A DNA stretch of 63,789 nucleotides, filler included, from Choristocarpus tenellus KU-1152 (lineage: Eukaryota; Protista; Phaeophyceae): NCBI GenBank assembly GCA_964200185.2. It is 12 parts of 12 records of this genome, joined end to end, with 100 filler letters (N's around TTAATTAATTAA, not from the genome) between each part and the next. Parts side by side here need not be neighbours in the genome. Positions count along the whole stretch, not along the records: positions 31,328 to 35,278 come from CAXNAD020016974.1; 11 more parts are not named here. The stretch is one strand, 5' to 3'. This document shows positions 31,328-35,739 of the stretch, in pieces (positions within the stretch are counted from its first letter, which is position 1; each line of letters opens with the position of its first letter). The translations under genes and the position numbers were made by a program. The notes beneath the pieces were generated by a model that was not told where the DNA came from, searched no databases, and saw only the letters and a program-made list of their open reading frames with translations.

Positions 31328-31480
31328 TGCTATATCGTAAAACTTACGTCTGGTATGCGCCCAACATGCTGCCTCCTCCACAGTGGCTTCTGGATTATCT
31401 TCACTAATGTATAATTTGTTGTATCCAGAATAACTGTCTGCGTGCAAAATGCCGTTAAAGTTTTTTAAGTGTTCTTGTTT
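31328..31480 (-). pseudogene. tnpC: IS66 TnpC DDE transposase internal fragment
   Basis: QEHLKNFNGILHADSYSGYNKLY...EEAACWAHTRRKFYDIA matches the IS66 signature (L..F.G.L..D.Y.GY......CWAH.RRKF). Confidence 0.92.
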
Positions 31481-31617
31481 TTTCTCCATCTACTTATTGT
31501 AGTGCGAGCCAATTTATACTTTCTTGCTAATGAGACCAAATCACATCCTGGCTCCAATGATGCCATTGTTATACGCTCCTTTAACTCGCGTGGTACGTCT
31601 GTGCGTCTTTTCTTCAT
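31465..31617 (-). pseudogene. tnpA: IS66 TnpA-like HTH protein, truncated (50 aa; below the ORF-track cutoff)
   Basis: MKKRRTDVPRELKERITMASLEPGCDLVSLARKYKLARTTISRWRKNKNT* has the HTH_Tnp_1 pattern (K.RI..ESL.PG....ARKY......RWR). GAGGAGG precedes the ATG. Confidence 0.78.
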
Positions 31618-33187
31618 ACTATTATTTTTCCTCCTCACTCACAAAAAGCGGTCTTTTTCAGAGTTTTACAAAGGCAAAACGAAACCCTTTTACCTCCCCC
31701 AACCCCCCACTTCTTTCTCCCCTCGCTCTCCCTGAACATGAACACTTGACGTAAAAATTGCACGGAATAATAATCGCGTGAAGTAAGACAAGATCTGGGG
31801 CTAGGGAACATGGTACGAAAAGCAACATTTAAAACAGACAGCGCGTAAATAAAATAAGCGACTTGTCATATTCAACCAATGGGATGCATGCATTCGCCCC
31901 ACAACTAAAACTTCAATCTCATCAGTCATCAACCAGGGATGGTGACTGTCAAAAGAGCTATAGGCAAGTGATCGAAGCGGACCGCATATCCTGCCTTATA
32001 CCATGAAGCGTTAATTATATGAGCGATAAAACTATTGTCACACCTACCTCAAATCAAAATAAGCAACCAAAACTGCAAAATCTTGACCCCACAGGCCAAA
32101 TCCGCAATTTCATTATCCTGTCTGCCCCCTGCCCGCCCCACTATGTGTCCTGTGGTATATATATATTCGTTTATCGCGAATCATAAATAAACATAACAGA
32201 GGCCCAAATTCTGGGTTGCAAGATCCACAAAATGGGATAGCTAAGATGAGGGTCAAAACAAGGTGTGCTTCAAAGTACTGAGTCTCTAACAAACCTGTTG
32301 GTGCACCTCAACAACATAGGCAGCCCAAACCCTGAGGCAGCTTCTACCAATAATAACATTTTCTCGCCCCACCACCAACAGACCCAACAGACCCACAATG
32401 ATATACTTCCGAAACAAAAAATAAATATTTTGTGCACCATCCTCAGGTCGGCACCTTTCCAACCCCACTGCAAGAAGGCGTGTTCACAACATCTTTCCTT
32501 TCCCCATTCAACTTTAAGGGATTGGACAGAAGAGTGGCAAAGGACTCTCACATTTCATTCCACCTCCAGTGAAGACAAGATGCGAGGACATCCCCCTGGG
32601 GCCCTGGTGCTACCCCTCCCCCCAGCCCCAACCAAGAGTTCCCACAACTACCACCACTACCCATAGGGTCTTGCCATCACCTTCCCCCACCCCTTATTCC
32701 TTATTCAGTGGGGGTGTCAATGTGACTTCTACTAGGGGGAGGAAGAGCAGATGGCAAATGGTTTGACCCATCAGTACTGAGACTGTCCTTATCAGTGCCA
32801 TTGCCTGCAAGGTTATCGCTATTGTCGTCCTGAGGGGGTAGGGGTTGGGAGGGAGTTCCACCTGTCTTCTGGTCAGGCGTGACTGCCTGGATGTCGAAGA
32901 CCTCCTGGACCGCATTACCAGAGTCGTTCCTTCTGCAAACAAAAGTGCAATTGAACAAATTGCAGAGGGAGGGAGTCAACAAGACAACAAACAGTGACCA
33001 GCTGAGGTTGTTGCTTCAAATTTGTTTGAACGTCACCTAGGACAGATGTACAGATACAGGGAAGGATTGAAATGCGTTGGTGCCCCAAGAGGCCCCTAAA
33101 CAACTTTACGCACTTGTATGCAAGCAGCTTGGCGTGTGTACAAGACAGCACTGTTGTCAGGGTGCCAAAAAAGGGCACACAGAAAAA

Positions 33188-33244
33188 ACACACACACACA
33201 CACACACACACACATGCACGCGCGCGCGCGCGCACACACACACA
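33188..33244. repeat. (CA)n-(CG)n-(CA)n microsatellite
   Basis: Visible alternating purine-pyrimidine run. Confidence 0.95.
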
Positions 33245-33717
33245 ATTACTGGTACACACATCGAATGAACTCTTTGTTAATCCCATGTGACTGACCAAGG
33301 GTTCACCTAGCATCCGTAACAGTAATCAATCGCCTCTTCTATACACAGAGAAAAAAAAAACACTATCTTGTACTACTGTCTGTGACAATCTTTTGTGAGC
33401 GTACATGCGTCTGAATGCGGTAAACCCAACACAGAACTGCCCCCGAAGGTGCATTTAGTCGAGCTGAAAGTCACGAAAGGGGAGGAAGCGATATCCTAGT
33501 ACCAGCACCAGCAATTCCCCCTCCCCCTGAACCTCTCCTCCCCGCTGCATGGCCTCATGGCCATGTTGAGAACAAGAACATACTACGATATTGAGGGCGG
33601 AGGGGATAAAGGTCCAGAAACAAAAGTTTTAAAAATCCCATTAAAAAAAACCCAACTCAACCGGCTCTCACTAGAATGTGAAGTACGGTACGGCACAGCC
33701 TGTCCTCCACAAGGCAA

Positions 33718-33836
33718 TATTATTATCATTATTATTATTATCATTATTATTATTATCATTATTATTATTATCATTATTATTATTATTATTATTATCATTA
33801 TTATTATTATCATTATTATTATTATTATTATTATTA
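33718..33836. repeat. (ATT/ATC)n trinucleotide microsatellite
   Basis: About 39 units. Explains the poly-Ile ORFs. Confidence 0.97.
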
Positions 33837-34259
33837 CAGATACTAACGACATAGGAACGATTTCTCCTTCAAAGTTTAAAAAAATCCTACACTACAAAAA
33901 AAAGTGAAAAATCCTAATCTCATTCCCTATCACTAATTGTGTGGTACGATCAGGTACACTATTGCTGCTAAAAACAAACAAAAAAACATCGGAATCAAAT
34001 CACTCCATATACTTCACTCACTCTTCCACATCACACCAGGAGTGTACAAGCACACTATCGCCACACTACCGAACTCTCAACACCACAACGTTTGTTTTTT
34101 TAATATATACTATTATATTATCTCACCCGTCTGCCACCTGGCCCGTTCCAGGACTGGTCTTCATATCACTTCCAGGGGCGCTACCGGAAACGCTCTTGGG
34201 CTGCCATATGCAACCAGAGCAAAAAAAACAAAAACAAAACACACACACACACAAGTAGT

Positions 34260-34520
34260 TAGCCTGCATTCCCAACACATTACAGTTTGCTTTCCGAATG
34301 CATTACAGCTTGCATTCCAAATTCATTGCAGTTTTACATTCCAAATTAATCACAGCCTGCATACCCAACTCATTACAGTTTACATTCCAAATCCAATACA
34401 GTTTTACATTCCAATTTCATCACAGCTTAACATTCCAAACTCATTACAGCTTTACATTCCAAATTCACCACAGCTTGCATTCCAAATTCATTACCGCTTT
34501 ACATTCCAAACTTTCACAGC
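34260..34520. repeat. Minisatellite, 23-24-bp unit ACAGYTT(T)RCATTCCAAATTCATT, ~11 copies
   Basis: Diverged tandem units with no spacers. Confidence 0.9.
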
Positions 34521-35142
34521 AAGGAGGTGCCAACACAGCAAGAGAGGGCAGGGTGTGGGGGTGTGAAAGGTCGCAGAGGAGGCGATCACATAAGAAGAGC
34601 CACCAAAAAGGCGTGAACTATGCCTGGACAAAAAAACAGGTCATAAAAAAAAAGAGTGAGCAAAGTAGTGTAGTGTGTGCCATACATAGCGCAATCACCG
34701 CCGCTCTTTATATTTTTTGTCTTTTTTATTTCAGTTTTTTTTCTTTAAAACGCAGAATAATTATTGTCCTCCAATTGTAAGAGATCGTACACACGCTCTC
34801 AACGAAAACAGCTCTCTCTCTCTCTCTCTCAAAAGAAAAAAATGTATATATAATAATAATAATAATAATAAAATTGAGTGCGGTAGGATTTCGGAACAGT
34901 AAAACAGAGTACTCGTGAGGAAAAATAAAATTAACTTGAGGTGTTCGATGCAAACATTCTTTACATACGCAACAAAATAGTAATAATAACAATAATAAAA
35001 AAATTAAAAAAGTAGAAGAGCAACAAAAATATTAATAACAATAGTAAAAAAAAAAAAATAGCAACAACAATAGAACAGTAACAATGATAAATAACAGTGA
35101 CAGTAATAATAAAATAAAACAATAACACCCAATAGCAACAAC

Positions 35143-35174
<32 letters not shown>

Positions 35175-35739
35175 CAGTTTTAAAAACTCCTGGACTTCAC
35201 ACAAACACACCATCAAAAGTCATTTTGCAGTAATGACATGACAAGGCGGGGGGGGGGGGTTGAAACTATCTTGTGTTTNNNNNNNNNNNNNNNNNNNNNN
35301 NNNNNNNNNNNNNNNNNNNNNNTTAATTAATTAANNNNNNNNNNNNNNNNNNNNNNNNNNNNNNNNNNNNNNNNNNNNTGGGACGAAATTGAGACAAAAA
35401 GATCAACAAGATAATTAGATAGAGAAAGGGGGGGGGGGGGGGGGGGGGGGGGTGGGGGGATATCGCAAGACAAACACAACCTGTAGCATTGGCTCAATAA
35501 AAGGCACAGGTGTCTATGTTGCTTGCTTTGTATGTCCTCTGCCCCCTTCCAAGCTCGGAATAACACATCAGGCGAATTGCAAAATTGTTTGAGAAAAGTC
35601 ACCAGCGTTGGTGGCAAGTGCAAGTCATACACAACACCACCACCCAAAGTGCTGTCAGCACACCCTGATGACAAAATCTACAATACATTTGAAGACTGAA
35701 TCCCAACTAAATCACCCAACCCAATTTCCCCAAACGTAC

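Follow-up and report, generated by a model that had tools for sequence, protein, structure and literature searches.

A truncated and internally deleted IS66 fragment of probable Rickettsiaceae origin within the inferred 3′ UTR of a gene with an intron

An IS66 fragment beside a spliced gene

The window is the whole stretch of 63,789 nucleotides, and the piece that we analysed runs from position 31328 to 35278. IS66 DNA spans 31328–31617 on the minus strand, a fragment of 290 nt that continues up to the contig edge at 31328. The DNA on its other side carries exons of a host gene in the same orientation. The features, all on the minus strand, are as follows.

31328–31478, minus: middle piece of tnpC, approximately residues 350–399 of a 568-aa transposase, ending at the contig edge
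31478–31479, minus: internal deletion joint, where tnpA is joined out of frame to mid-tnpC, with a stop at 31467–31465
31479–31617, minus: tnpA codons 1–46 of 113 (the helix-turn-helix half), starting at the ATG; 5′ end of the bacterial insert
31618–31621, minus: host/bacterial junction, 1–4 nt before the tnpA ATG, where alignments stop
31622–31670, minus: host DNA mistaken for an IS left end and ribosome-binding site; no left-end similarity above shuffles
31436–32700, minus: inferred 3′ UTR of at least 1,265 nt, the last 180 nt being IS66 fragment; from the unbroken X2 contig 32890–31436
32701–32932, minus: last coding exon of the host gene, 76 codons and a stop, 53% GC, in-phase open frame
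32933–34126, minus: spliceosomal intron of 1,194 nt (GTGAG ... pyrimidine tract, CAG), skipped in X2
34127–34200, minus: upstream coding exon of 74 nt; 3′ edge from X2, 5′ edge predicted by an AG that follows a T-rich tract

Two pieces of an IS66 element adjoin in the fragment, in the order and orientation of the intact element, in which they lie ~1.5 kb apart. The tnpA piece (31617–31479) shares 138 of its 139 nt with the full-length elements L088, L095 and L096, and its product is 91% identical to protein P0122. The original prediction had recognized here a 50-aa TnpA-like helix-turn-helix ORF, and such an ORF does lie at 31617–31465, where a Pfam profile search matched it to PF01527 (HTH_Tnp_1) at E 7e-4, under the cut-off; an exact protein look-up of it returned no record. 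It had been described as absent from the ORF track, where it is in fact listed as a 57-aa GTG ORF. The tnpC piece (31477–31328) is the same as the environmental copy L085 at 150/150 nt and as protein P0009 at 50/50 residues, and the tnpC of L088, L089, L095 and L096 shows 11 differences from it. The predicted CWAHTRRKF stretch of TnpC is present in another frame than the tnpA ORF and matches positions 119–163 of PF03050 (DDE_Tnp_IS66) at E 8e-14. Across the 290 nt, environmental copies differ by 0–1 substitutions, and since the tnpC piece is identical to one of them throughout, the bacterial transfer is recent.

The DDE transposase is thus represented by a partial PF03050 match, preceded by the first 46 codons of the upstream tnpA gene. 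No tnpB (PF05717) was found between tnpA and tnpC, where relatives carry it. Judged from its sequence, the fragment is IS66-derived, yet it is not a complete element: the left inverted repeat and tnpB were both looked for and are both absent.

Relative to L088, ~1,564 nt are absent, comprising the 3′ half of tnpA, the entire tnpB and, in tnpC, codons 1–335 (its 5′ ~60%), a deletion that the original prediction had overlooked. If the tnpC side was L085-like the joint is blunt, with no filler and no common bases. The join is out of frame, and consequently the last four residues and the stop of the ‘50-aa TnpA’ are tnpC DNA. A 7-nt word common to tnpA and tnpC near the deletion, GGAGAAA, fails to reproduce the joint and so lends no support to joining by microhomology.

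The bacterial DNA begins at the tnpA start codon

In 13 full-length or left-end relatives, one of which is 99% identical to the fragment in tnpA, the genuine left end starts with GTAAGCGT and lies 79–81 nt before the tnpA ATG. Relatives with both ends present have right ends matching the left and a total length of 2.39–2.48 kb. These positions are confirmed as the true termini by L090, which has an 8-bp duplication, GAGCTTGT, directly outside both of them, and the left ends agree with the published IS66 repeat GTAAGCGTCCGG (PMC12888890). The genuine leader (L088:740–760; also L003, L004 and L086) contains a conserved palindrome, CTTGATT ... AATCAAG, before the tnpA ribosome-binding site, a possible operator or RNA hairpin.

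None of this terminus was recovered at the locus. The motif GTAAGCGT is absent from the analysed piece with up to three mismatches allowed, and upstream of the ATG the 90 nt are no closer to seven genuine left ends of relatives than shuffles are (52–99.8% of shuffles match the score), whereas L088 scores far above shuffles against the same left ends. A blastn search against 96 fetched loci (610 kb) gave no alignment past 31621. MAFFT gave the 50 nt upstream a faint likeness to the L006 left end, which we set aside because it was likewise no better than shuffles. Other tnpA copies, in sequencing runs X1 and X3, diverge from the reference at 31615–31618 into genuine IS66 leader.

The original prediction had placed an apparently exact IS terminus at a GTAA at 31669 and named a Shine-Dalgarno word, GAGGAGG. 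That GTAA belongs to host DNA: the word occurs 32 times in the piece, and finding one within 100 nt has a 1-in-3 chance. The GAGGAGG word is present as described, near 31636, but it is one of three in the piece and is host DNA rather than an IS66 ribosome-binding site. Similarity to bacterial DNA stops not at an inverted repeat but 81 nt further into the element, where tnpA starts. The argument for transposition fails because it was based on similarity ending at the repeat. The proposed target-site duplication (31670–31677) and the 21-mer proposed as a search word are both host sequence; the latter had no match in 185,579 genomes, and its sole match in metagenomes arose by chance, inside a yeast protein-coding gene. 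The left inverted repeat is missing, as is typical of insertion without transposase, unless it was lost afterwards. No more than 4 nt separate the break from the start codon, a placement that random breakage would rarely give (by rough estimate, 1%) and that counts against capture of a broken fragment.

The junction and the deletion recur in three sequencing runs

We followed both joints in runs X1, X2 and X3, which come from one organism (samples S1–S3 of one study), may represent one strain and were read as contigs; X1 is probably the run from which the window derives. The original prediction had proposed mapping reads across 31669/31670, and in each run a single contig crosses the host/bacterial junction with 0 differences: 31520–33170 in X1 (depth 15.5), 31436–32890 in X2 (depth 216) and 31412–31987 in X3 (depth 8.7). 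In all three the junction has the same depth as the flank, there being one depth figure per contig. The bacterial DNA is therefore physically joined to host DNA in independent data from three runs and three samples. Contigs of all three also cross the deletion joint, and in X2 and X3 the contig that does so is the one that crosses the junction. Other copies in X1–X3, seen as loose ends, keep intact tnpA past 31479 and intact tnpC before 31477. No empty, insert-free allele is listed in X1–X3.

A further run, X4, from organism B, holds two 151-nt records identical to the locus and nothing else of the flank. They are likely carry-over between libraries of the study, and two such records were not counted as support for the locus. 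The locus stretch also occurs in small shares in marine and macroalgal metagenomes.

The flank is a eukaryotic gene with the fragment in its inferred 3′ UTR

The original prediction had described the DNA beyond 31670 as microsatellite-rich; runs of (CA)n, (TAT)n, (CT)n and (AAT)n do occur past 31620, with (CA)n and (TAT)n microsatellites lying in the intron. The flank has no match in Pfam, Rfam, plasmids, phages or the 96 fetched loci. In X2, depth falls to zero from ~32940, and a loose end at 32933 corresponds to the window from 34128 onward; the splice joint is read from this loose end of the contig. X1 and X3 read into the intron. The skipped edges are GT and AG (chance ~1.3%), and the exons are in phase: the one open frame of three in the upstream exon leaves 2 nt, the last exon supplies 1 nt, and the frame runs on to a stop codon at 32703–32701. 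With its GT-AG intron, in-phase exons, microsatellites and want of a bacterial match, the flank is eukaryotic, and with contigs spanning the junction the proposal that bacterial IS66 DNA is joined to eukaryotic nuclear DNA is borne out. An alga is a plausible host, given the small shares in marine and macroalgal metagenomes and the occurrence of Megaira in algae (PMC10132079). The host gene was searched exon by exon; the 24-codon exon is below searchable size, and the last exon, searched alone, had no match in Pfam, in the protein collection or in the Atlas, though longer kin may exist.

Compared with the others (longest contigs 245 and 136 kb), the X2 assembly consists of fewer, shorter contigs (97 Mb; longest 16.7 kb), and we infer that X2 is RNA. 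A deletion in another genotype was rejected as the reading of its gap, as the edges of the gap are GT-AG and the exons in phase. A reading of X2 as a bacteria-free DNA sample is also dropped. Starting in the last exon, the X2 contig crosses 1,083 nt of host DNA without interruption and enters the IS66 fragment, and this places the fragment in the 3′ UTR in sense orientation. The contig stops at 31436, and the window's alleles below that position are absent from X2; this hints that the transcript ends inside the IS66 fragment, although a contig is no proof of an end.

The same region offered several side observations. The GTAA of the original prediction (31670–31666, minus strand) sits within the sole TGTAA of the inferred 3′ UTR. 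Late-branching chlorophytes use UGUAA as their poly(A) signal (PMC1868727), and as one TGTAA in 1.4 kb is the chance expectation, we take this as a lead only. In X2 a minor branch of depth 4.5 departs from the last exon at a CAG/GT site near 32861 (32861–32890), possibly an alternative splice donor. In the 3′ UTR, 40 nt at 32497–32536 have a diverged copy elsewhere in X1, X2 and X3 (six differences), a small dispersed host repeat. A 24-nt minisatellite of ~10 copies (34267–34510) lies upstream of the 74-nt exon and probably belongs to the next intron.

Other IS66 copies in the same runs

The original prediction had attributed the contig break to a multicopy element, and the break is indeed caused by several similar copies, which are present in the runs. 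The IS parts in X1 and X3 are deeper than the flank and divide into variants. Type C, recognized by alleles such as 31358T, 31391A and 31445T, stands at ~3–11 times flank depth in X1 and 1–4 times in X3, and is absent from X2; it is best read as a co-sequenced bacterium. Type B, ~90% identical to window positions 31328–31477, has a depth of 12.5 in X1 (flank 15.5) and 7.05 in X3 (flank 8.7), and appears in X2 as a 1,470-nt contig at depth 262. It alters a Tyr that is invariant in 132 full-length homologues. The X2 contig of type B reaches 779 nt past 31328, the right end lying 545 nt past that point in L004, so type B may retain, or extend past, the right inverted repeat. Type B is probably a second, decaying and transcribed nuclear insert, its haplotype being deduced from the equal depths.

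Single truncated copies were also seen, one joining G-rich low-complexity sequence (a G-run) within tnpC at 31427 in X3 and one joining non-IS DNA within tnpA at 31507 in X1; in one copy in X1, ACG replaces the tnpA start codon at 31615. The scattered internal breaks fit fragment capture. The host-like junctions observed besides that of the window are internal (31427 and 31507), and copies with the genuine leader are present as well. Having no end, the window copy does not qualify as a member of a eukaryotic IS66-derived transposable element family.

A probable Rickettsiaceae donor

Among plasmid sequences, the fragment is matched best by an IS66 of Rickettsia asembonensis (73%). In a quick tree of TnpC, in which the window fragment was represented by P0009 and the short frames L007 and L045 were omitted, the P0009 clade (SH-aLRT 100) contains every named sequence from Rickettsia, Tisiphia and Rickettsiaceae and no sampled free-living proteobacterial one. 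Close full-length copies, with 91% nucleotide identity in the tnpC piece, have TraG, TraD, MobA, ParB and Rpn genes as neighbours. The best plasmid matches of these genes are in Ca. Megaera and Rickettsia, TraD being 52–57% identical to that of Ca. Megaera. Both the tree and these neighbours favour the Rickettsiales-like donor that had been proposed.

The nearest relatives are metagenome contigs, two of which (L004 and L006) sit in MAGs labelled Cyanobacteria and Saccharibacteria; these are probably mis-binned small contigs. L004 also carries an ISAs1-like transposase frame and the apparent ends of a relaxase and an Rpn gene. IS elements pass between taxa. Since the nearest copies lack a taxon and two are in otherwise-labelled MAGs, the donor, a Rickettsiaceae (Megaira-like) intracellular bacterium, is probable rather than proven. 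Ca. Megaira has been found in algae, including in a brown alga project (PMC10132079).

In L090–L093, IS66 copies with the same TnpC protein occupy different sites of a Megaira-like conjugative region. The L090 copy, with its 8-bp target duplication, is located between Toprim and MobA genes, an arrangement that is a sign of recent IS66 activity in the bacterium.

Origin of the fragment

We think it probable that the locus records a recent transfer of DNA from an endosymbiont to the nucleus, in which a fragment was inserted by end-joining repair and not by IS66 transposition. In a Megaira-like member of the Rickettsiaceae this IS66 would be multicopy and borne on a plasmid or conjugative element; symbiont DNA would enter the host nucleus, with multicopy IS DNA over-represented among such fragments, and host end-joining repair would ligate one fragment into a chromosome break. 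The landing site would have been the 3′ UTR of an intron-containing gene, with the fragment in the orientation of the gene. The 1.56-kb deletion could have occurred earlier in the bacterium, or could reflect a two-piece patchwork made during or after insertion. The fragment would since have been carried passively in host mRNA, 1,083 nt behind the stop codon; so far behind it, translation is unlikely, and the insert may have shifted the 3′ end of the mRNA. As it has no left inverted repeat, no tnpB and no whole transposase, the fragment cannot transpose, and it appears to be without function.

Transposition could still enter the history if a complete IS66 had transposed, or had arrived within a larger bacterial segment, and host deletions later took the left end, tnpB and half of tnpC. 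The conserved order and orientation of the pieces would agree with this, as would type B, which stands at host-like depth and may keep a right end (779 nt against 545 nt). We nevertheless hold it to be unlikely: the left end is absent, two separate deletions would have to fall within the time of 0–1 substitutions per 290 nt, and a screen of 430 eukaryote genomes kept only IS607, with no sign of transposition (PMC3673617). A broader version, in which there are several young nuclear IS66 copies and at least one, for example type B, entered or moved by transposition with intact ends and 8-bp duplications, the window fragment being a decayed member that may form a new mRNA 3′ end, strikes us as decidedly improbable. 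That the original GTAA is after all an exact left end made by transposition is scarcely credible: it does lie 52 nt before the ATG and has the GAGGAGG word, but in relatives that are 99% identical in tnpA the left end is another one, of 81 nt and conserved, with which the analysed piece shares nothing, and no bacterial IS66 was found with 31669–31619 as its end.

An artefact, either an assembly chimera of host DNA with a co-sequenced bacterium or cross-contamination between libraries, deserves weighing given that the pieces are 99–100% identical to environmental bacterial copies, that the more abundant variants of X1 (~3–11 times the flank in depth) suggest a live bacterium within the DNA-like samples, and that the two lone 151-nt records of X4 show that carry-over occurs. 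Yet three runs, each assembled on its own, show the same junction and deletion at flank depth, one of these runs is spliced, and the abundant variants are missing from X2, where the window copy reaches depth 216, so that we consider such an error very unlikely. We give equally little credence to a retrocopy, in which an IS66 transcript with a very short leader was reverse-transcribed by a host enzyme that jumped from the tnpA to the tnpC part of the template, the copy then being inserted. Template jumps yield clean internal deletions, and the 5′ edge does fall on the start codon. The donor leader, however, has its ribosome-binding site just before the ATG and should be carried by the mRNA, retrocopies are usually truncated at random 5′ points, and neither a poly(A) tail nor a duplication is visible; AT-rich microhomology accounts for the edge equally well, and loose ends hint at host copies starting at unrelated positions.

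Comparison with known systems

The locus represents a well-supported and very young entry of bacterial DNA into a eukaryotic nucleus, where that DNA now belongs to a host transcript. It points to a Rickettsiaceae symbiont that the organism harbours now or harboured recently. The fragment itself is in all likelihood plain debris of symbiont DNA, which can serve as a marker and as an example of how such scraps alter mRNA 3′ ends. In the literature searched, no nuclear genome was reported to carry IS66 DNA. The type of event is most likely one already known, from Volvox and from Wolbachia inserts, and IS66 transposition is unsupported for the window copy.

Compared with classic IS66 (tnpA-tnpB-tnpC with inverted repeat GTAAGCGTCC..., PMC12888890), whose Rickettsiaceae subgroup (L085, L088, L090) is the source type of both pieces, the window copy has no left inverted repeat and no tnpB, retains partial tnpA and tnpC out of frame with each other, and lies in eukaryotic DNA. 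Prokaryotic IS DNA in a eukaryotic setting has a precedent in the IS607-like sequences that Gilbert and Cordaux retained after screening for all IS families (PMC3673617). Their criterion against contamination, IS DNA beside a eukaryotic exon, describes the window copy as well; some of the IS607-like sequences are full length or under selection, whereas the IS66 DNA here is fragmentary and bears no sign of domestication.

Nuclear Wolbachia inserts (nuwts) and numt/nupt mosaics are likewise symbiont or organelle fragments in host chromosomes, often several together, sometimes as patchworks and sometimes passively transcribed (PMC3849323, PMC6215612). Measured against these, the window insert has a Rickettsiaceae-type IS66 donor and a host that may be neither arthropod nor nematode. 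The nuclear rickettsial DNA of Volvox carteri (PMC4324946) is alike in being truncated Rickettsiaceae DNA next to host expressed sequence and judged non-functional. That insert is ~9 kb long and carries housekeeping genes (16S, murB, ddlB and ftsQ, the ftsQ piece being 88% identical to its comparator), whereas the window holds an IS scrap of at least 290 nt, 99–100% identical to environmental copies, in the 3′ UTR of a spliced gene.
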